A stretch of DNA of 62,972 nucleotides, the filler included, from Reticulomyxa filosa (taxonomy: Eukaryota > Protista > Foraminifera): NCBI GenBank assembly GCA_000512085.1. It is 20 parts of 20 records of this genome, joined end to end, with 100 filler letters (N's around TTAATTAATTAA, not from the genome) between each part and the next. Parts side by side here need not be neighbours in the genome. Positions count along the whole stretch, not along the records: positions 7,567 to 17,265 come from ASPP01026208.1; 19 more parts are not named here. One strand, written 5' to 3'. Both the position numbers and the translations under genes were made by a program. This document shows positions 5,451 to 17,265 of this stretch, piece after piece. Positions within the stretch are counted from its first letter, which is position 1. Each line of letters begins with the position of its first letter. The notes beneath the pieces were generated by a model that saw nothing but the letters and a program-made list of their open reading frames with translations, was not told where the DNA came from and made no database searches.

Positions 5451-7739
5451 GATAACGTCAAGCGCAGTCCAATGATAATAGCGACGACAACGATAACGCA
5501 GTCCATGTCACTTCCATCATTTGTCAATTACTTCAAGATATTGGATTGGTGTTATATGTGCCAATATTCGGTTCACTGCTGTTGGTGTCGCGGAAGAGAG
5601 GTAATGCTGTTGCATCATTTATCACAAAAAGCAACAAGTTGTGCCAATCGATAATGGATTGACGATTCAAAAGTCGCTCCGTTATTTACCAAGCAAAACA
5701 AAGCTTGGATATTAGTGGCGCTGGGCTCCTGCTGAGCGCAATATTTTATGTCAGCAGTCGAGTCCTACACTCTATCATTTCAACTCTCTCATCTCAAAGA
5801 TGCAGTCGCTGTGGATATGAGCGAATTGTTCGGTTATCAAAAACCGAACCACTCGAATTCAAAAAGTGGAATGATCGGCCATTGACAAGACCGCACTTAA
5901 AGAAATGGTAGCTCTAGGGGAAGAGTATTTTAGTGATAATATCTTCCTTCAAGTCAGTTCAATTGTTCATACTTGATGGAAGCATTACCATTGAAATCAA
6001 CGTACATATTCCAATACAAGATCTCAAGGTATTTTATTGGTAATTTGTGTGCCTGTCTCTTTCCTGATATTATAATTCGTGATGGGTCCATTACTTGAAA
6101 AGGTTTTTTTTTATTTGTACATATTTAATATAAAACATCTTCATAACGTATATTTAATATTTATGTATACGTGTGTGGTATAATGTTGCTTGAACTTTTT
6201 GAATAGATCTTTAAAGGTGTGTAAATGGAGATAGACAAGCTGTTGCTGTTAACATTGCTATTGGTGCTGAAGTGAATTCCCAGTAGAAATAGTAATAGTA
6301 TAGCAACAACATGCATTGATTATGGGTCATCGTATTGTACTTTGAATAAAGTATAATTTGGAAAAAAATAAAAATTTGGAGGTCCATATCCGTGTAAATG
6401 TGCTCATGATTGATTGAAAATAATGAGCTGCGCAACATATGTTTCCAAGTTATAACCTTTTTTTATAATGTGATTGAAAAACACTTGACACACGTATGAT
6501 GAATACACATGTATATAACATAGGGTTCCAAAGAACCAATACCTGTCTGTCGAGCAATTGAAAAGTGGCTTGTGGTTGCGGTGTCAGCAAGCAAGAGTAA
6601 AGTCAAACAATGCCAAATTTGTGGCATATTTGATTGCAAGTGTGTCTCAAATGTTGTTTTTTTTTGTCCCAAATGTAATTTTTTGGATTTTTTTTAAAAA
6701 TATCAACGCTTTTCTCCAGCACCTGACATCTCTAATCAAATTATATTAATTGTAAAAAATTTCTGAATTTTAATATTTTAAATCTAAAAGAAAGTCAAAA
6801 ATATGCAGATAGATTCGATTTGGTTTTCACTTTGAAAAAACTGATAGTTGGAATTAATTGCAGGTGATATATGCAATAGACTCTTCTATTATTTAGAGTT
6901 GGTGCAAAAAAAAAAATAAGTACTCTAAAAGAGCCACACGTAAGCGTCGACTGTACAAAATAGGAATTGATTCTTGTTTTGTGTAGGAGTAGAGGACAGA
7001 AGAATACCTATAGAGAAAACAAAAAGACGAGAAGCAAATGGAGGAAGTAGAGTCTGAATCCAATGAAGCCAATGAAAACAAAAATTGCAGTAATATTGGC
7101 GATTGGAAGTTGGGAAGATGTTCTTTGGCCATGAAAAGGAACAAAAGACTCTGAAATTTCAAAAAAGAGCAGAAGAAGATGATAAAACATGAATAGTAAA
7201 ACAAGAGTTTAAAAAAAAAGATACAAAATATTAATTTTTCATCATTCAATTTGACAAAAATCTTTCTTATTTACATAGCAAAAGAAATACGTTTCAAAAG
7301 AAGATTTTATCAGACCAAATCGTTGTGACAACTCAATTGCCTAAAAAGTTTCTCCACGTTGTTCCACGAGCAATATCTGTGGTAAAATTAAACCTTTCGC
7401 ACCTTTACAAATACTTATCTTTATCGATAAACCACAATATGGAACTCCACCCTGCCAAACGCATTTNNNNNNNNNNNNNNNNNNNNNNNNNNNNNNNNNN
7501 NNNNNNNNNNTTAATTAATTAANNNNNNNNNNNNNNNNNNNNNNNNNNNNNNNNNNNNNNNNNNNNAAAAAAAAAAAGAACAAAATATAAAACATAGCAT
7601 TTAAACTAAGTTGATGCATCGACGCAAGTACATTATATGAACATATATATAATGTATACATATATACGTATACACATATATGTACATATATATGTATACA
7701 TATATATACATATATATATATATATATTATATATGTAAC

Positions 7740-8979
7740 TCGATTCAAAGCACGCCACACTTTGGTGGCATCGGAGGACAGAGAAGGGATGAACAATTCG
7801 ATGCATTCGATAGAGGACTGTTTCCACAAGGCTTTCATCAAGGCATAGGTATCGCGGATGTCAGTTTCCATCAGTTGATGTTGCACGACGGACAGAGGGA
7901 TGAATTGTCCGCTTTGCAAAAGGAGTTTGGCGCATTGGAACTCCAAGCTGCGATTGTAGGCCATTTTGACAACAAAGTTTTCGCCTTGGGCGTTCTTTTC
8001 GTAGAGGATGAAGCGGGACGTCTGAAAGTGCAAAGGATAGGAGAGCATCAGCGGCGCGAGCGTGTGAGGCCGGAAGCCGGCCATTTGCAGCTGCACGTCA
8101 AATGAGTTGTTGGTGATTTGCTTTGAGCATTGCAGCATAAAGTCTTGCAATCGAGCGATTTGGTTCCACGGGTGCTGTCGTTCTTTCAGTAAGGACATGG
8201 ACTTGAGCAGCAGTCGAATCTCGCCAATGATGCTTTCGTGATTGACGGTGTAAATCAGGTTGACTTTTATATCTCGATATTGTCTCGGGATGTCATCTAA
8301 ATCCAAATCGGAAGAAGAAAGAGGAGAAGAAGAAGATGATGATGATTGTAAGGTAGGGTCTATAGCATTGAGATTGGTTGCGTGATTGGTTGCGTTTTTG
8401 ATTGGTTTGAAAACGATCGAAAACGACGACTTGGAGGAATTGGAAAGGAAACCATTTTTGACACGTAGGATTTGAAACAGGTTGTACTTTTCCTCTTGAA
8501 TGGTTGCGACAAAGTGGTCCAAGCCATGCTTCAGTGTCTCGATGGTATCGTAAATGACTTGACAGCGAATAATGTCGATAATGTGTGCCGACTTTGGGTA
8601 CTGCCCGTCCTTGACATACTCCACTTGCGCCTTCATCTTGCAGCGATCAATGTTCTTGATCGCTCCACTCTTGAACACGCACGTGACGCCGCTCGACTGC
8701 ACAATCTTGTTGATCTCTTGCTGGAACGATGAATTCAACTTGTGCGCACGAGTGAGCAGCTCGTTCAAATATATGTCGTAGTCATATATATGTCGGGGAT
8801 GGAATGACATGTCGCTGCTTTGCATTTGCATATGCAACAAGTCTTGCAACGTATGTTGGCAATTCACCCCAAATGGAATTCGGTCTTGTCTCCAATTTTT
8901 TTTATGAAAGATTACATTATTGCTGTTATTATCATTATTAATATAAGTATTATTATTATCATTGATGTTATTATTATTG

Positions 8980-9015
<36 letters not shown>

Positions 9016-10971
9016 GTGTTATTATTATTATTATTGCTGTTGTTGACTGTAGTATTATTAATGTCAGTGTTGTTGTTGTGATCATATCTATCCAATAAAA
9101 CATGGTCATATTTCCATCGCTTGATTTCGTTCATCAACTGTTCGTTCTTCTTAATTTCCTCTCTTATCTCGCTTTCAAACGCCTTTTTGTCCATTTCACT
9201 TTCAATGTCGCAGTAGTTTTTGATCTCTTCGAAACACGTCGGCTTGGCTACTTTCGGCTGTCGGTTTCGTTTCAGCGTCCGATGTGGGTTCTCAAAGATG
9301 TTCATATTGTTATCATTGTTATTGTTATTGTTATTGTTATTGTGATTATCATTGTCGTTGTCATTGTCATTGTCATTGTCATTGTTATTATCATTGTTAT
9401 GATCATTGTGATTGTCATTGTTATTATGGTTATCTTCTTCTTTACCCGTCTCATTGTCATTGCTATTGCTATTGCTATTGCTATTGCCATTGCTATTGCC
9501 ATTAGTATTGTTATGGTTGCTGTTGTTGTTATTGTTGGCATTGACATGATGAGATGGGGCTTCTTCCAACCAACACAGCAAGTCTCTGTTTTCAAGCAAA
9601 TGCTCGACAATCCATTGCCATTGATAGTTGTTCTTATGAATGGTATTTTTGACGTGCAACATCTGTTTGCACTGTTCGAACAAGCAATCCCACATTAACT
9701 TGGAATCGAAGATCCAACACAAGTTAAATATCTGCGTGCAAACCATTTTGCCATCTTTGATCATGGCGATGATGCTGGTGATCAACACATTTATTATATG
9801 CTTCAGCTCCTCCTCATCACGCGTGTTATTCTTCAAGTACGACAGCATCATTTCGCTCCTCTCCTTCTCCTTCAAATAGGTCGACGCATAGTCTCTTTCT
9901 TTTTGCTGTCTTTCGTCCAATCGCTTCACACTCATTAGCAGCTTTATTGCTTCCTCATTTTGAAACATTATCGCGTCTTGCAACGCCTCCGTCACTTGTT
10001 GGTCACTACTTTTTATTATCTCCGATTCCAACAAATAGCGCGCACATTTCACATTGCTCGCGCTGTAAGGACTTACCAAATGTCGTAATAAGTTCATCTT
10101 TTTTTTTATATGCATACAATATACATCATATACATATATGTACATATATGTATATGTATATGATGTATATTGTATGCATCCCTTCTCCCCACTTCCTTCC
10201 TTCTGTTTTTATAGATGTGTGTAACATTACCTCATAGCCACGATACTCAAATGTCATGTCAATTTTTATTTGTTTTGTTTTTGCATATCTTTCCATTATG
10301 TCCACAAATATGTCATTTTTTTCGTCATCTGCGTATAAACATGCATACAACAATATCTTTCGCTATAATATCAATCCACACAGTTCCACATGCAAACACG
10401 TACACGCATATATATATATATACATATATATATGTATATGCATATATGTAAATGTATATGATATACAAATGCTCAATTAAGCATCGGAAACAATAACAAA
10501 CTTTTTTTTTTTTTTCACTTAACACATTTTAATTCAACGTCTGTGATTTGATCGATTTCTAACAGCCTTTGACAATACCATGGATCGTTAACTACTGATT
10601 GATGATGCTCCCTACTCCGGAGGTTTGACGATATTACACTTATTGTTTTTAATGTGTTCCCGTTGTTCTCTTCTAGTTCTTTTCGCAACTCTTCTTCGCT
10701 CATTACTTCGCCATACAATAATTCCAATGCTTGTAGTTCTTTTGAATACTTTCCTCTTTTATTTTTTTTTTTTGAACACCACCAAAAAGAGGTTGTGTTG
10801 AATCCGTCAACAAACAAATAATTACATAATGTTGAAAGCCTACGTCATCATCGAACCAAACCCATTTTTTGTGCTTTTTGTTTTTTCCCTCATTTTCGGG
10901 TTATTTTGAAACGTAAAGCTACTTTGTCACCTGGCTGATTTCAAGGTTATGTCTTGTTTCTTTTCTTCCAT
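7740..10971 (-). CDS. Multi-exon protein with ankyrin-like helices, poly-Asn linkers and a RelA/SpoT synthetase-like (nucleotidyltransferase) domain; 3' end cut by contig end
   Basis: The large exon (about 7740-10098) contains GAIKNIDRCKMKAQVEY, HIIDIIRCQVI, RVKNGF, QYRDIKVNL and IIGEIRLLLKSMSLLKERQH. Upstream exons are at about 10232-10362 (RKILLYACLYADD...) and 10525-10755 (ELQALELLYGEVMSEEELRKELEENNGN, UBA/CUE-like by eye). The start near 10971 is uncertain. Confidence 0.72.
8911..9545 (-). repeat. Poly-Asn / Asn-Asp trinucleotide and hexanucleotide tracts inside the CDS
   Basis: (AAT)n, (AATGAC)n and (AATAGC)n runs in frame, in two blocks at about 8911-9080 and 9305-9545. Confidence 0.95.
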
Positions 10972-12974
10972 CTTTTGTTTTGATTTTATACGATCAACGA
11001 ATCAAAAGGAATTTTATATATGCTTAATTTTTTGTAATGTGCTATATATATCGTCGTTCACAATATTTTTTATTCGTTATTTTCACCTTTAACAGAACTT
11101 TTAGCACAACTTCTGTTGATTGATAATAGCACAAGCTTAAGAACTCAAGTATAACAAAATTTAAAAGAAATCAAGTTGTATCCGTGAAGAATGGCAGCTT
11201 ACAACAAAGTCGCTGCAGTTTGACAAAAATCAAACAGATATTTTGTTTAGATTTTGCTAATATTATTTTTTAAAAATGTCAAGATGAAAAATTGCATTGA
11301 AAATACAATAATATGACAAGCAGCAAAAACAAACATTCCAGCAGCTATTTTTAACATTTAACTCCAAACATTTTTTAGAAATTTTTGAGTACGACACAAA
11401 ATTTGTTATTATTGAACTGTTCAAAAAAGCAAGATGGATGCATTTCAAGAAAGGGCATAGGCCTCCGTTTGCATGGTTAAAAAAAAGTCATATTTGCAAT
11501 TACAACCCGGCTAATATCTTCTCGTAATACAATACCACAAAATTAACAACAAGAAACATCACAAAACCTTTTGTTCCGCTCTTTCTTGCTAGCCTCCAAA
11601 AAAAGCAAGTCAAGTGAAATCAAACAAATATCAAAAAGAAAAAAAGATGAAGCGCTATCGGATGCACTTCTTGATCATTTCCTCAAACTATTCAATCACC
11701 AATAATTTTTTCTACAACATCGAGTGACAAGTACCACATGACGCGCAACCAACTAATCCCAGACATCAAATAAACAAGTGAAAAAAAAAGTGTATTTGCA
11801 CGTTTGCATGATTTATTTATTAATTAGTCAATAAAAAAAATATTACAAAACCTGCTTATGCTCCAAAATAGGCCAGTGAGCTCTCATAATATTTATTGAT
11901 TATATAGTTCACATTGAAGAATTTGAAGAGAGCCAAGTGAAAGAGCTTTACAATATTTCTGCAGAACAGTAAATCAAAGGAGTCATATTTTTTGTAATTG
12001 TTCGTGCTCTTCTTGTTTCTTTTTATACTCTTGGCTTCTTTCACAAATAAATAATATTTCATTCTGATAACAACTGAATAAATTTCTGTTCAAGGTTAAA
12101 ATATTCAAAAACAAACAAATCAATTTTTTTTGAACTAATGCGAACACACTCTGTTTTTAAAATTTTTTGGATCCATTCTTTTTGGAATTGAAATAATATT
12201 GTTGCCTTTTTTTTATCCTTTTATTGATAGATTTTGGTTTAAAACATAAGAGATCATTTTTTATAAAAATACTTGTGCAGCTTTTATTATTTGCAAGACA
12301 TTTATTTCAATTTTTTACTTTTTTCTGAAGTATTTTATAGTCTTGTATCTAAAATTATATCACAAAATAAATTCATCTTGTCTGCAACGTGCCAAACAAA
12401 ATAAAATATCTTTAGTTTTCAAATCTATATATCTGACTGTTTGTAATTTTTTCATTTTGCCAGTTAGTATAGCTTTTTATTTAATTGTTTCATTTTCACA
12501 TTAAATATGTCAAGAAAAAATTAGTAAACACTTTAGACTCCATCCAATTGTATTTATTGGTCGAGTATTTACAAGCACTTTGTGTTGATGAAAACTTGTA
12601 ACTTTGTTTTGCTTGCCACAAAGCTCAACAAAATTTTTTGTATGATCATTGATAACAGTTTTGATCTAAAAAAGTTGCCTGAAATATCGTCACGTCGAAC
12701 AATTAACACAATCATCCAGTACATTTGCCGTCAGTGAGTTCAACTGGTTTTAGCGTCAACACGTAAAAAAAACAATTTTCAATTTTAAATAAACGGAAAA
12801 AATTGCAATGAGCAGCCGTTACAAACATTCATAATATCAGTTACCACTTCTTGTAGCGCCTTGTCCCAAATGGACTTGGGCTTGGCCAACCACTCAAGTG
12901 ACCTTCTGGCTCTTTCTTGTCGATCTAATCGCTGAATCGCGCTTTTTCATCTCTTTCTTGTAGTACAATTGCGA

Positions 12975-13062
12975 TAAAAGTGTAACGTATATCCAGTAAA
13001 CCAGAAAAAATCATCACAATTTGCTACTAAAATTTTGGTTAGAAACACAAAAAGTTCACGTT
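12975..13062 (+). repeat. Interspersed repeat, copy 1 (inverted copy at about 19097-19182)
   Basis: ataaaagtgtaacgtatatccagtaaaccagaaaaaatcatcacaatttgctactaaaattttggttagaaacacaaaaagttca is nearly the reverse complement of tgaactttttgtgtttctaacaaaattagtagcaaactgtgattattttttctggtttactggatatacgtttatacttttat. Confidence 0.85.
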
Positions 13063-14898
13063 TTAGGAGTTGCTAATTTTTTTGTCGCAACTGTAGTAGT
13101 ATAAGTTTGTTTTGTATTTGATCTTTGACAATAAAATACGATATCCACTTCCGATGTTATGTTGACTTCCCAATACTCGCAAAATTAGACATTTGTATAG
13201 TGTATTTCCCTATCAAATTTTTTTTCAGTTTTTTTTCCATACATTATCTTTTCAGTTGCAAATTTCATTGACTTCTTTGAAGTAACCTAGTGTTCTTTAT
13301 ATGTTTCTGTTTGTGGTTGCTTTGTGGATGTTTTAAACTAAGATAAAATGTTTTCCCACAAATTCGACATCGATTTTTTATTTGCTTAGAGACTTTATTA
13401 AAAATTATTTAATTCATAATTAGTTGTTTCATCCTATCATATGAAACAAACTACATAAAATCACGTTTATTACAAACAGTATACACACCAGAAAAAATTG
13501 TTTCATTTTTAAATTAATTATCGTATTTTTTTTCTTCAAAAGTTCACGATACATTATTGAAAGTGTTATTTAGAATAAAAAAAAGTTCTTCGTTCAAATG
13601 AGAAAATTTTTTTTAAAAGTTTAGTTTTCAAGTTTTTTGTTCGTAACGTGTAATTTATCAACGACATATTCTTTGAGCTAGTCGATTTTTTTTTAGTAAG
13701 TTCTTATAGTATTTTGTTAAAAAAAAAGAAAAACTTGTTTTTGTACATGACAATTTACAGTTTCTGTTCTGAAAAATAATTTTAGAATCAAAAAATTTGC
13801 TAATTAAATGTAACTAAAAAAAAATAAGATTTATGCAAAATAAATTTAAGTTTGTGTAGTGTAATGAATTATGACGATGTAAGAGTGCGTCTTAAGTCTT
13901 ATGCTTCTTCCAAGTTCATTTTATATTTAAAAGCATATGAAAAGACAGTTAATAATCAGGCAGAGCTTTCTTGTTAAAAACTACTTTTTCTTTTGAAAAA
14001 ACGAAGTGTGGGAAAAATTTAAATGCGGTGTTCATTAACTCACCCAACAAACATCGTTCTCCTGCATCATGCAACAATCGGAAGGTTAAAAAAACTATGA
14101 GTTTAATCAATTGAAAAATAAATTGTTTTCTGTTTTGACGTACTAGTTTTCACGAGGGGATTTTTTAAATCAAAATAACACCTTTTTTTTTGTCATATCA
14201 TGTTGCAGTTTTCCCATTTTGCAATAACTATCACAGATCATCCAGATCTATTACTGCTATGAAGAAAATTAACCACAAAACGTGTTCTTCGCATTTGCAT
14301 CTGCTTTTTAAATCAATTTAATATTGCAAAAATCTTTGATTTTGATTCATTCCTATTACAGATCACCTTTCTTTTCGGATATTACTACAACTGATGTCAC
14401 TTTGCTTTTTGTATAAATACCGACTGAGTTAGTATAGTTTGTGAATACTAACTCATGAAAATAAAATCATTATTCACTTTTCTATCTGATCTCTGCACTA
14501 ACTACAAAACAGCGCACGAGTATTGTGTTGCATTTGGGACAATGTCACAGGAAACATTGAAAGATATAATCTTGTCAAAGTAAATTGTACTTCCTTGTTC
14601 GTCAAAATTTTTCAAACTGACCACTCTGAACACATTACTTCAAGGATCCATCAACAACAAACTGTTCATCTAAAAATACTTGAACGAAAAGACTCAATAA
14701 CTAAAGTATGAATGCTTAAGTAGAATTCATATTTAAATTGATATCCTTATGTCACCTTTTCTACATCACATTCTACTAACATGGAAATCTAAAAGTAAAC
14801 ACGCGTGTCCAAGTTTAATGACCATAACATTTTATCCTGCACATATGAACAAAAAATTTCTCACAATTAAAACAAATTCAACTAAGTGCATCCAAATT

Positions 14899-17265
14899 CT
14901 AGATATTAAAGTCAAATTTTATGTGTACTTCATGTTCGACATATTCTTTTCCTTTGATTGTCACTGTCACTCGAATCATTGTTTCACCAAAATAAAAACG
15001 AACATCATAGCTATCCTTCAGATTGTCAAAATCTTCCGGAAATGGAACTTTAATATTTCCTAAACGTTTGCATTTTGTTATCACTCCTGGATCTATTTTC
15101 TCACTACGATAGATTGAGACACATGTGTCTTTGTTATTTTTACTTGCTGGGGTGTAACTCATTTCAATCATCTGTAAATAATCAAATAATGAAAAAATCA
15201 ACACAAAAAAAATAATATCAACATTTGATTATTGAAACATAACAATTGATTGCAACAAATATTAAAATATTAACTTGTCCCACTTTCACTTCTTCATTTT
15301 TATTCACAAATACATCAAAACAATTACTAACGTACTCTTCGTTGTCAGTATCACTAATAAATTTGTATTTGTTGATATGATCTTCACTAATTTCCGGATG
15401 AGATTGAGCTCTTTCAGTTGGCCAACAAATATTATTACCATAAGTGTACTTAACAATTCTGGAAGTAATAAAAGAAGGGATTCTTGCTAATTGCGCAGCT
15501 CCTTCAATTACTGATAAAACAGGTCTTTGAGGAATTACAAATGTGTATTTTGGTTCGTAATGTTGTTTAAGTTTGGATTGTAGATAATGAGATTGACTAA
15601 ATCCACCCACCAAACATATATATTTCAGTTTTCCACTCAATATTTTTTCATTTTTATTCAACATCTCATTCATTTTTTTGATAATTGGATCAATTCTTAT
15701 ATCAAATAATTTCGTCCACAGCTTACAAGAAAGTGATAAGTATTCATGATCATATTCATGTCTTTCATTTTTATTTTTTTGTTTTAATTTTAATGAATTG
15801 GTTATGTAGTCTTTTTAAACATAGGAAAGGAGAATAAGAAGCAAACCCAGATTCTCCAAGATATTCAAATTTGGCAACTAATTCTTCCAGCTCACCAATG
15901 ATATTTTTTTGCATAAATTGATCAAATTCATATGGGATTGGAATTCGATGGACTCCATTTTTCTTTTGAATTTTGAAAAATCGTTGTTTGCTGTCTTCAA
16001 TATCCGCCAACAATTTTAGATAATCTTTAGGAAAAGTTTTTTGAAATTTTTTCATGGCTTCTTCTCCAAATATTTGTTTAAAGATTGTCTCAACATCATG
16101 ATCAATATAAGAGCCACCCCAAGGCCCTCCGAATGAAGCGATCATTTCTCTGACTTGAAATGGTCCTGTGATCTCATGACACACCATATCAGCAGTCCCT
16201 GCTCCCAAATCCATCATCATATAACAATCTCCTGTTTTAAATTGTATTCCACTTTGATTATCTCGCATTGCAAGCATCATACAAACACTTGCACATTCAG
16301 GTTCAAGTGCAATAATCAATTGATTAGGAATGGATGAATTCCACAAAGTTGCCTGTTTTGCCCATTGTTTCATTATTCCTTTTGCTTCTTCACTCCAAAT
16401 TGCTGGCACTGTGATTGCCCATTGTATTTTATTTTCATTTACAATCAAATTATTTTGCTCCAAATATTGCATTGCCTTTTGTTTGCAATATTTCAAAGCA
16501 CCAACAAACACAGTTTCAGATTTGACATTGACACCATTCATGGATTGCAATTCTTGTTTAATAGTTGATTGTTTGTTTGTCTGATATTGACCTGCTACAT
16601 CTATTTTTTATTTATGCGTATAATGACTTTTTTTTTTTTTTTTTTGTTAAATCACAACATTAACAAGAAAAGTAAGAAAAAAATAAAAATGAAAACTAAC
16701 CATACAAATACATTTTGAATCGATGAAATAACAATCGTTGATTGGTATCTTTGTTGTTTGGAGATTGATATCTTTCAAGAACAAATAAAAACAAATTCAA
16801 TTGTTTTTGTTTGTTTGTGTATGATGTTAATTTAAAATTTAGATTTGAAACTGATGCCAGGCCTCATTTCCAAAAGCAATGACATTATGATTTTCATCCA
16901 ATAACAATGCTGTCTTTGTTTTTCCATTTAATTCTGCTCGATCAGATATTCCATTGCTGTTCCAATCTGTTATGAGATGAACCCCTTTCGATTTTTTCAT
17001 ATTAATACCCATTGCTGTTCCTTCTGTTCCAAAATCAATTGCAATTATGCAATCGAAATTTTCCGTATTTTTCCATGGAATGCTGGAGCTTTTTTTAATG
17101 AAAAACGGAGTCAGTACTAATTCAAGAGTGAGTGAATTAAATAGAAAAAACCTTAAAACTGGTCTGCGTTGAATTGGTTTTGGGGTTTGACAGTGAATGC
17201 ATTTCAAATATTCTTGCGCGTTTTTCTTCTCACATCTTGTACAAAGCCATTCTCCTTTTGTGTGT
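14899..17265 (-). CDS. HSPA12-like atypical Hsp70 with N-terminal RanBP2-type zinc finger, multi-exon, 5' truncated
   Basis: Motifs IIAIDFGT, KTKTALL, FHRFKMYL, WAITVPAIWSEEAK, IALEPECAS, DLGAGTAD, GGPWGGSYID, LVGGFSQSHYL, SVIEGAA and SRIVKYTYG are HSPA12-subfamily signatures. Confidence 0.88.
17175..17249 (-). other. RanBP2-type zinc finger coding segment
   Basis: Translates as WLCTRCEKKNAQEYLKCIHCQTPKP, an exact W-x-C-x2-C-x3-N-x6-C-x2-C match. Confidence 0.85.

Follow-up and report, generated by a model that had tools for sequence, protein, structure and literature searches.

Gene structure at the locus

The window, the whole stretch of 62,972 nucleotides that was analysed, is composed of 20 parts of the Reticulomyxa filosa assembly GCA_000512085.1. 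The piece at positions 7567-17265 (ASPP01026208.1) consists of AT-rich eukaryotic DNA and carries a minus-strand gene whose main exon encodes, in order, an ankyrin-like start, a helical domain, two poly-Asn linkers, an RSH synthetase-fold domain and C-terminal ankyrin repeats. The gene includes the following features:

10524-10757, minus: candidate further upstream exon (helix bundle), putative member of the gene; open frame, plausible splice sites
10231-10362, minus: upstream exon with ankyrin-like helices, about 44 codons long (paralog P0008 matches it in tblastn at 48% identity along 27 aa, E 0.002); position of its acceptor uncertain by a few codons
10098-10230, minus: phase-0 intron of 133 nt, GT...A-rich AG
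7740-10097, minus: main exon, 786 codons open (ORF; whole-exon homology to R. filosa paralogs; AlphaFold2 pTM 0.79)
9918-10097, minus: N-terminal ankyrin-like repeat(s) (Ank_2 in paralog P0002 at the aligned position, E 4e-8; 27-52% identity to paralogs)
9525-9917, minus: all-helical domain, conserved and confidently modelled, with the family motif S-D...W-x-W-x-K...S-x-I-W
9273-9524, minus: poly-Asn/Asp low-complexity linker 1 (ORF and model)
8913-9065, minus: poly-Asn low-complexity linker 2 (ORF and model)
8133-8894, minus: RelA/SpoT-type synthetase (SYNTH) domain; its helical R-Q-D extension at the N-terminus is conserved across the family (fold and family profile)
7743-8105, minus: C-terminal ankyrin-repeat fold (residues 665-785 match RNase L, IkB, Bcl-3 and DARPin, Z 6-7)
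7739, minus: donor site

The nearest relatives of the exon protein are all hypothetical proteins encoded by R. filosa nuclear genes (identity up to 48%), and the exact protein was not among the database matches returned. Comparison with these paralogs supports the predicted introns, and with them the spliced nuclear gene proposed in the sequence-only reading: the junction equivalent to the 133-nt intron is seen spliced in paralog P0005, and the intron style is shared by the paralog loci. Since the donor at 7739 sits about where paralogs splice or end, the 3' exons are expected beyond the edge of the piece. The exons were searched individually and not as one spliced model; sequencing runs searched for the stretch gave a share of ≤0.07 at best.

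The short helical exon at 10524-10757 had been read as UBA/CUE-like, a suggestion that found no support: it has no significant match in Pfam, NCBIfam, PDB sequences or paralogs and is absent from the fetched paralogs, and what it may recall is a UBA-like motif at the N-terminus of many hypothetical proteins of Reticulomyxa. The proposed ankyrin flanks are supported by the structural matches of the C-terminal repeats and by the Pfam Ank_2 match of a paralog at the equivalent N-terminal position. Both poly-Asn linkers are disordered in the exon model. For the helical domain at 9525-9917, Pfam gave no match and the structural search with the whole exon nothing clear; the domain precedes the synthetase in most long family members and is a candidate regulatory domain. 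No HD hydrolase domain was found, in agreement with the earlier reading; this is shown mainly on relatives, since the 3' end of the gene lies outside the piece. Neither a signal peptide nor a membrane helix was detected for this gene, nor any evidence of a transit peptide, on a gene model whose N-terminus is provisional.

Elsewhere in the piece, a multi-exon gene at 14899-17207 (minus strand) encodes an Hsp70/actin-like ATPase with D-F-G-T and D-L-G-A-G-T phosphate motifs and weak matches to HscA (E 7e-4) and ParM; no link to the synthetase gene was seen. We take it to resemble the HSPA12-like genes expanded in Reticulomyxa. Between both genes lies a long AT-rich region (11000-14500) without a convincing ORF.

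The synthetase-fold domain and its predicted active-site residues

Modelling of the domain with the family alignment (AlphaFold2; pLDDT 86.6, pTM 0.80) left only a Ser-rich insert disordered, and the model retrieved RSH synthetases ahead of everything else, as expected for the Pol-beta-like RSH synthetase fold anticipated from the motifs. The 31 PDB chains that Foldseek gave at E≤0.001 are without exception alarmone synthetases, and the top 11 rows of an exhaustive VIA search were all RSH synthetases (Z 12.8 to 8.6), led by SaEAS (Z 12.8, rmsd 3.2, 159 aligned) and followed by RelQ (12.4), RelP (12.1 and 12.0), CapRel (11.9), Rel (11.0), Tas1 (10.8), and then SpoT and RelA. Other Pol-beta enzymes scored Z 8.4 or less. 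These structure scores do not separate EAS from RelQ, RelP and CapRel (Z 12.8, 12.4, 12.1 and 11.9).

Pfam misses the domain. Scans of Pfam, PHROGs, NCBIfam and PADLOC gave no family-level match, a single-sequence PDB search returned nothing, and the PF04607 match proposed as a check failed to appear in any of the 124 members at E≤0.1. Since neither the window domain nor the 124 aligned members match Pfam, the family is annotated as hypothetical. Its link to PF04607 is transitive, through RelV-like proteins that match this profile at E 2e-7 to 2e-5.

The motif series described earlier was recovered in full, in the order given and in a single open minus-strand frame; the domain itself, placed before at 8150-8790, is slightly larger and extends over about 8894-8133. 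Its elements are as follows:

8631-8657, minus: Syn1-type basic motif K-x3-R-x3-K within G-x-x-K-x3-R-x3-K (K 8657-8655, R 8645-8643, K 8633-8631), 96-99% conserved per residue, equivalent to K-x3-R-x3-K of Tas1
8565-8576, minus: D-x-x-R metal/ATP motif, spaced as in SaEAS (D121/R124)
8448-8465, minus: R-V-K-N-G-F (R-x-K-N-G-F) motif, RelV counterpart V-K-N-R-F
8304-8432, minus: disordered Ser-rich loop insertion within the domain, not conserved (AlphaFold model)
8259-8279, minus: Y-R-D-x-K-x-N (Y-x-D-x-K-x-N) motif
8151-8222, minus: Syn4-type segment E-x-[Q>R here]...M...K...H-x-x-[Y>N here]...R; the catalytic Glu is retained (E-x-R 8222-8214, followed by M, K and lastly H at 8174-8172)

None of 100,000 exon shuffles matched this ordered pattern, a result that is only a floor, the pattern having been written from the same motifs. 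The active-site set that SaEAS has in common with Apk1 comprises D121, R124, K154, N169, E182 and Q184 (PMC12691689); judged from the alignment, it would correspond to D107, R110, K146, K210 or N212, E225 and position 227 of our domain, the Lys of R-x-K-N-G-F probably aligning with SaEAS K154 and Apk1 K353. The Lys of Y-x-D-x-K-x-N occupies Y+4, in a register that is ambiguous by two residues. This position, invariant in the family, is His in RelP-type enzymes and Asn in RelV and Apk1, so the acceptor is not predictable from it.

The window copy departs from near-invariant columns at three positions (domain numbering): P78A, Q227R (Gln in 94% of the family) and Y244N (Tyr in 92%). The E-x-R motif noted before is thus present, as a departure from the E-x-Q of the family that the sequence-only reading had missed. 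With Arg in place of the conserved Gln this copy may be impaired and, together with Asn for Tyr, its activity is likely weakened or its specificity altered; it may be a weakened, a re-specified or simply a mis-assembled copy. That it alone is a pseudoenzyme or a decaying paralog, which is compatible with the reading of the family given below, is a substantial possibility, though we do not favour it. The changed Gln belongs to the ATP site described for SaEAS and Apk1 (PMC12691689), and several sister paralogs lack many catalytic residues; against this stand the intact metal ligands D and E and basic residues, an open frame of 786 codons, a branch that is not unusually long (0.44 versus a median of 0.34), and the fact that the Q and Y changes each lie one base from the usual codon, so that assembly error is possible.

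Family range, architecture and bacterial relatives

A phmmer search returned 437 representatives at E≤0.001 (50% clustering). At least 15 paralogs were counted in R. filosa; the other named members come from Nonionella stella, Elphidium margaritaceum and Bolivina argentea (EukProt transcript sets). GC-rich members, on a transcript-like contig and on a marine contig adjoining an MGAT2 gene, suggest non-foraminiferan eukaryotes as well, and the Atlas lists diatom and ciliate clusters, taken here as a lead only. Identity is about 30%, yet the 12 core active-site residues are all retained in 108 of the 124 domains of the family; degeneration is seen in a few R. filosa paralogs. The paralogs P0008 (RFI_22376) and P0007 (RFI_01368) are among those whose motif set is intact. 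Among 104 long members, 67 carry Ank_2, and others carry WD40, RCC1, SPRY, CH or zinc fingers; a separate subclade is WD40-linked. No NACHT or NB-ARC is among the families listed for these 104 proteins.

No HD domain occurs among the family members examined, and no export or delivery domain (Sec, PAAR, MuF, LXG, SKWP) was found. A hydrophobic N-terminal stretch is present in 4 of 75 long members versus 84 of 107 bacterial RelV-like proteins. The suggestion of a toxSAS-type system does not extend to a toxin-antitoxin arrangement: neither in the piece nor in the fetched loci does an antitoxin or hydrolase gene adjoin the synthetase gene, no antitoxin or SAH gene was recognised beside the relatives, and for the family no hydrolase or immunity partner was found.

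On a marine contig (L139:1-6607), member P0018 combines a tandem pair of synthetase domains with numerous ankyrin repeats; it lies directly after a same-strand PH and ankyrin ORF, possibly part of one gene, and XopAD-type effectors likewise have two RSH domains. On L003:1-8567, a gene-dense contig of 50% GC, member P0145 is intronless and its neighbours have no Pfam match.

On the bacterial side, the family profile matched weakly the Syn1 segment of Tas1 (E 1) and PRK09169, a model that presumably covers XopAD/SKWP proteins; the Atlas listed a MuF cluster. The published Apk1-homolog data set holds Vibrio proteins with K-x3-R-x3-K, D-x-x-R, V-K-N-R-F, G-Y-R-D-L-N and E-V-Q (PMC12691689). We fetched 107 such RelV-like proteins. 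Pfam identifies them as RSHs, as do their matches to PDB sequences of RelP, Tas1 and SaEAS, and by genus, size and motifs they appear to correspond to the RelV/VpEAS cluster of that study. On them the eukaryotic family profile scored 31-56 bits (hhalign probability 98.65, E 5e-16), values inflated by a fetch pattern in DNA that resembled a motif of the query family; D-x-x-R, K-x3-R-x3-K and E-x-Q were not part of that pattern. The same profile gave 24.6 bits on a Bordetella phage RSH beside portal and hydrolase genes, 2-15 bits on RelP/RelQ-type proteins and 0.4 or less on long RSHs. In the reverse direction, the window domain alone scored 20.8 bits on the RelV-like profile, versus ≤5.0 for 500 shuffles.

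In the phylogeny against bacterial SASs called for earlier, the eukaryotic clade (100/97) is nested within an EAS-like group (100/99); a grouping of this clade with RelP/Q was rejected (p-AU 0.008). The tree has few outgroups and long branches that meet, lacks the tRNA-modifying toxSAS sequences and allows no donor to be named. Sequence comparison thus refines the placement: the nearest relatives appear to be the exported or toxin group of RelV/VpEAS, Apk1/Apk2 and XopAD, rather than RelP/RelQ or long RSHs.

The tRNA-modifying toxSAS were compared by structure only (CapRel Z 11.9, FaRel2 Z 7.0), and they bear on a rival explanation in which the same chemistry acts on a macromolecule, either the 3' ends of tRNA or other RNA, as in the toxSAS CapRel/FaRel2, or a protein, and stops translation. 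The CapRel match, which spans 161 residues and includes the N-terminal extension, speaks for such a target, as do the extra invariant basic residues of the family and its unusual Lys at the acceptor position. We nevertheless consider it unlikely: the FaRel2 match is weak, and sequence and tree put the family with the RelV/Apk-type enzymes, which use a nucleotide acceptor, in a tree that holds no tRNA-modifying toxSAS.

Several further observations concern phages, plasmids and viruses. In Bordetella phage PHB04 (L128:2083-4348), an RSH protein annotated as hypothetical lies directly after the portal gene; a small ORF and then an HD hydrolase come next, as in the layout described for apk2-tis1-aph1. 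Two Deinococcus plasmid genes (L129:1896-2767 and L137:469-1521) encode RelV/EAS-like domains and are each followed by a small ORF, possibly as unannotated toxin-antitoxin pairs. A tblastn search of phages and plasmids with the eukaryotic domains gave nothing useful. A giant-virus source of the family was considered and found no evidence: viral searches yielded no close homolog, the BFVD matches being phage RSHs of only 11-18% identity.

Proposed function and comparison with known systems

Together, the fold, the conserved residues, the architecture, the expansion and the nuclear gene structure of the family are best read as those of a pyrophosphokinase that descends from toxin-type alarmone synthetases of bacteria, has expanded in eukaryotes and is gated by repeats. 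In the complete explanation, to which we assign a probability of roughly one half, the window gene is one of many paralogs of mainly foraminiferan RSH-fold pyrophosphokinases that are related to the exported or toxin alarmone synthetases of bacteria (RelV/VpEAS, Apk1/Apk2, SaEAS, XopAD) and that would be active, gated by their repeats and cytosolic, with a nucleotide output serving defence. Its parts are not equally firm. It is highly probable that the family is an active pyrophosphokinase; the acceptor is probably a free nucleotide; gating by the repeat and helical modules is somewhat favoured; and a defence role rather than nutrient signalling, argued by analogy, is an even call.

Mechanistically, the residues of K-x3-R-x3-K, D-x-x-R, K-N and E-x-Q would form the ATP-Mg site of active members, from which pyrophosphate would pass to the 3'-OH of a guanine (GTP/GDP) or adenine (ATP/ADP) nucleotide; this cytosolic reaction would yield (p)ppGpp, (p)ppApp or both. 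Until a ligand binds, the enzyme would be kept inactive by its flanking repeats (ankyrin, or else WD40, RCC1 or SPRY) together with the helical domain packed against it, and the output could be a growth-arresting or toxic nucleotide burst against microbes or viruses. A cytosolic enzyme from a toxic clade, with neither hydrolase nor immunity partner, would need such built-in control. The many paralogs, swapped repeat modules and frequent decay resemble sensor-effector or birth-and-death immune families. Several points count against this explanation: the invariant Lys of Y-x-D-x-K-x-N is unlike every characterised enzyme examined, no hydrolase or immunity partner was found, the RelV-like set was selected by a similar motif, the outgroups of the tree are few, and the structure scores do not single out EAS. 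More tentatively, and with less confidence than in the explanation as a whole, we envisage that a toxin-type alarmone synthetase of bacteria gave rise, in foraminifera and some other protists, to a large family of cytosolic sensor-enzymes. Their variable repeats (ankyrin, WD40 or RCC1) would sense microbes or viruses and trigger synthesis of (p)ppGpp, (p)ppApp or a novel product pyrophosphorylated at the 3' end. If true, eukaryotes would have an innate-immune nucleotide pathway parallel to cGAS/OAS, with the RSH fold as its basis.

Alternatively, the (p)ppGpp made by the family might be a routine second messenger of nutrition or development, with the repeats as localisation or scaffold modules. 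The nearest characterised relatives, RelV and VpEAS, are ppGpp-specific (PMC12691689), ppGpp is present in non-plastid eukaryotic cells for which no synthase is known (PMC7666150), and family transcripts occur in foraminiferan transcriptome sets. Yet conflict systems would account better for lineages with dozens of divergent paralogs, shuffled domains and frequent decay, and we regard the messenger role as improbable. Elphidium and Nonionella keep stolen diatom plastids. Both have family matches and the exact protein was not found in the databases, so bacterial or kleptoplast contamination, or a chance arrangement of motifs, was weighed; it is largely refuted and very improbable, given Reticulomyxa-style spliceosomal introns at positions common with paralogs, poly-Asn tracts, eukaryotic neighbours, nearest relatives that are without exception R. 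filosa nuclear genes, and the outcome of the shuffles.

The family bears on the long-open question whether alarmones of the (p)ppGpp type are made by eukaryotes outside the plastid, and by which enzyme. ppGpp has been detected in animal cells, its synthase not being known (PMC7666150), and non-plastid SASs were thought sporadic (PMC3153485). The family supplies several hundred eukaryotic members missed by Pfam with an intact predicted active site, including those of a plastid-free amoeba. The ppGpp of animals would not be accounted for, as the matches whose source was checked include no animal member. If the family is active and repeat-gated, the RSH fold would join the bacterial conflict enzymes reused in eukaryotic immunity.

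Among characterised systems, RelV and VpEAS (EAS cluster B of Vibrio-Shewanella; PMC12691689) are the closest: they share the SYNTH fold, the absence of a hydrolase and of an adjacent immunity gene, and K-x3-R-x3-K, D-x-x-R, K-N-x-F, Y-x-D, E-x-Q and H-x-x-Y in the same order. They are, however, proteins of about 257 aa with a Sec signal peptide, whereas the foraminiferan family is nuclear, spliced, 600-1900 aa long, without signal peptide, flanked by ankyrin or WD40 repeats, and marked by Y-x-D-x-K-x-N. VpEAS and RelV make ppGpp, Apk1/2 make ppApp and SaEAS makes both, and all are toxic in the cytoplasm (PMC12691689). Of Apk1/Tas1 and Apk2, the T6SS- and MuF-linked (p)ppApp toxins, Tas1 resembles the family in fold (Z 10.8) and in the aligned Syn1 segment but lacks the K-N-x-F and Y-x-D motifs, and the phage portal-adjacent RSH has the profile score given above; the SKWP effector XopAD likewise joins helical repeats to RSH domains (PMC13667924). 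Unlike Apk1, Apk2, XopAD and RipS, the family is encoded by eukaryotes and lacks both an immunity gene and the delivery domains PAAR, MuF and SKWP. SaEAS, RelP/RelQ, CapRel and the long Rel/RelA/SpoT enzymes share the fold (Z 8.6-12.8), yet compared with RelP/RelQ and the long RSHs the family lacks HD, TGS and ACT domains and has D-x-x-R instead of D-x-x-G-x-R.

The plastid RSH1-4/CRSH enzymes of plants and algae are also eukaryote-encoded SYNTH folds; the family differs from them in having no HD domain and no evidence of a transit peptide, and to our knowledge Reticulomyxa has no plastid. Restricting eukaryotic synthetases to these plastid enzymes, as the earlier reading did, was an overstatement, given the divergent non-plastid SASs (divRel) that occur sporadically in fungi (Aspergillus, Gibberella), Dictyostelium and diatoms (PMC3153485). 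RelA_SpoT N-termini have also been reported in fungal NLRs (10.1101/2022.03.16.484565), where the RSH domain stands within an immune-type architecture. Like the family, both are non-plastid, synthetase-only eukaryotic RSHs of probably bacterial origin; they are sporadic and found with standard RSH profiles, whereas the family is Pfam-negative in 124 of 124 members, free of NACHT/NB-ARC and massively expanded. Our literature search, which left most subscription journals outside, found nothing on RSH domains or ppGpp in Reticulomyxa or other foraminifera, nor on an ankyrin/WD40-flanked family. Bacterial RSH toxin domains are well documented (PMC3482391, PMC10083569, PMC12691689), as are the sporadic non-plastid eukaryotic SASs; what is added here is an expanded foraminiferan family flanked by ankyrin and WD40 repeats.
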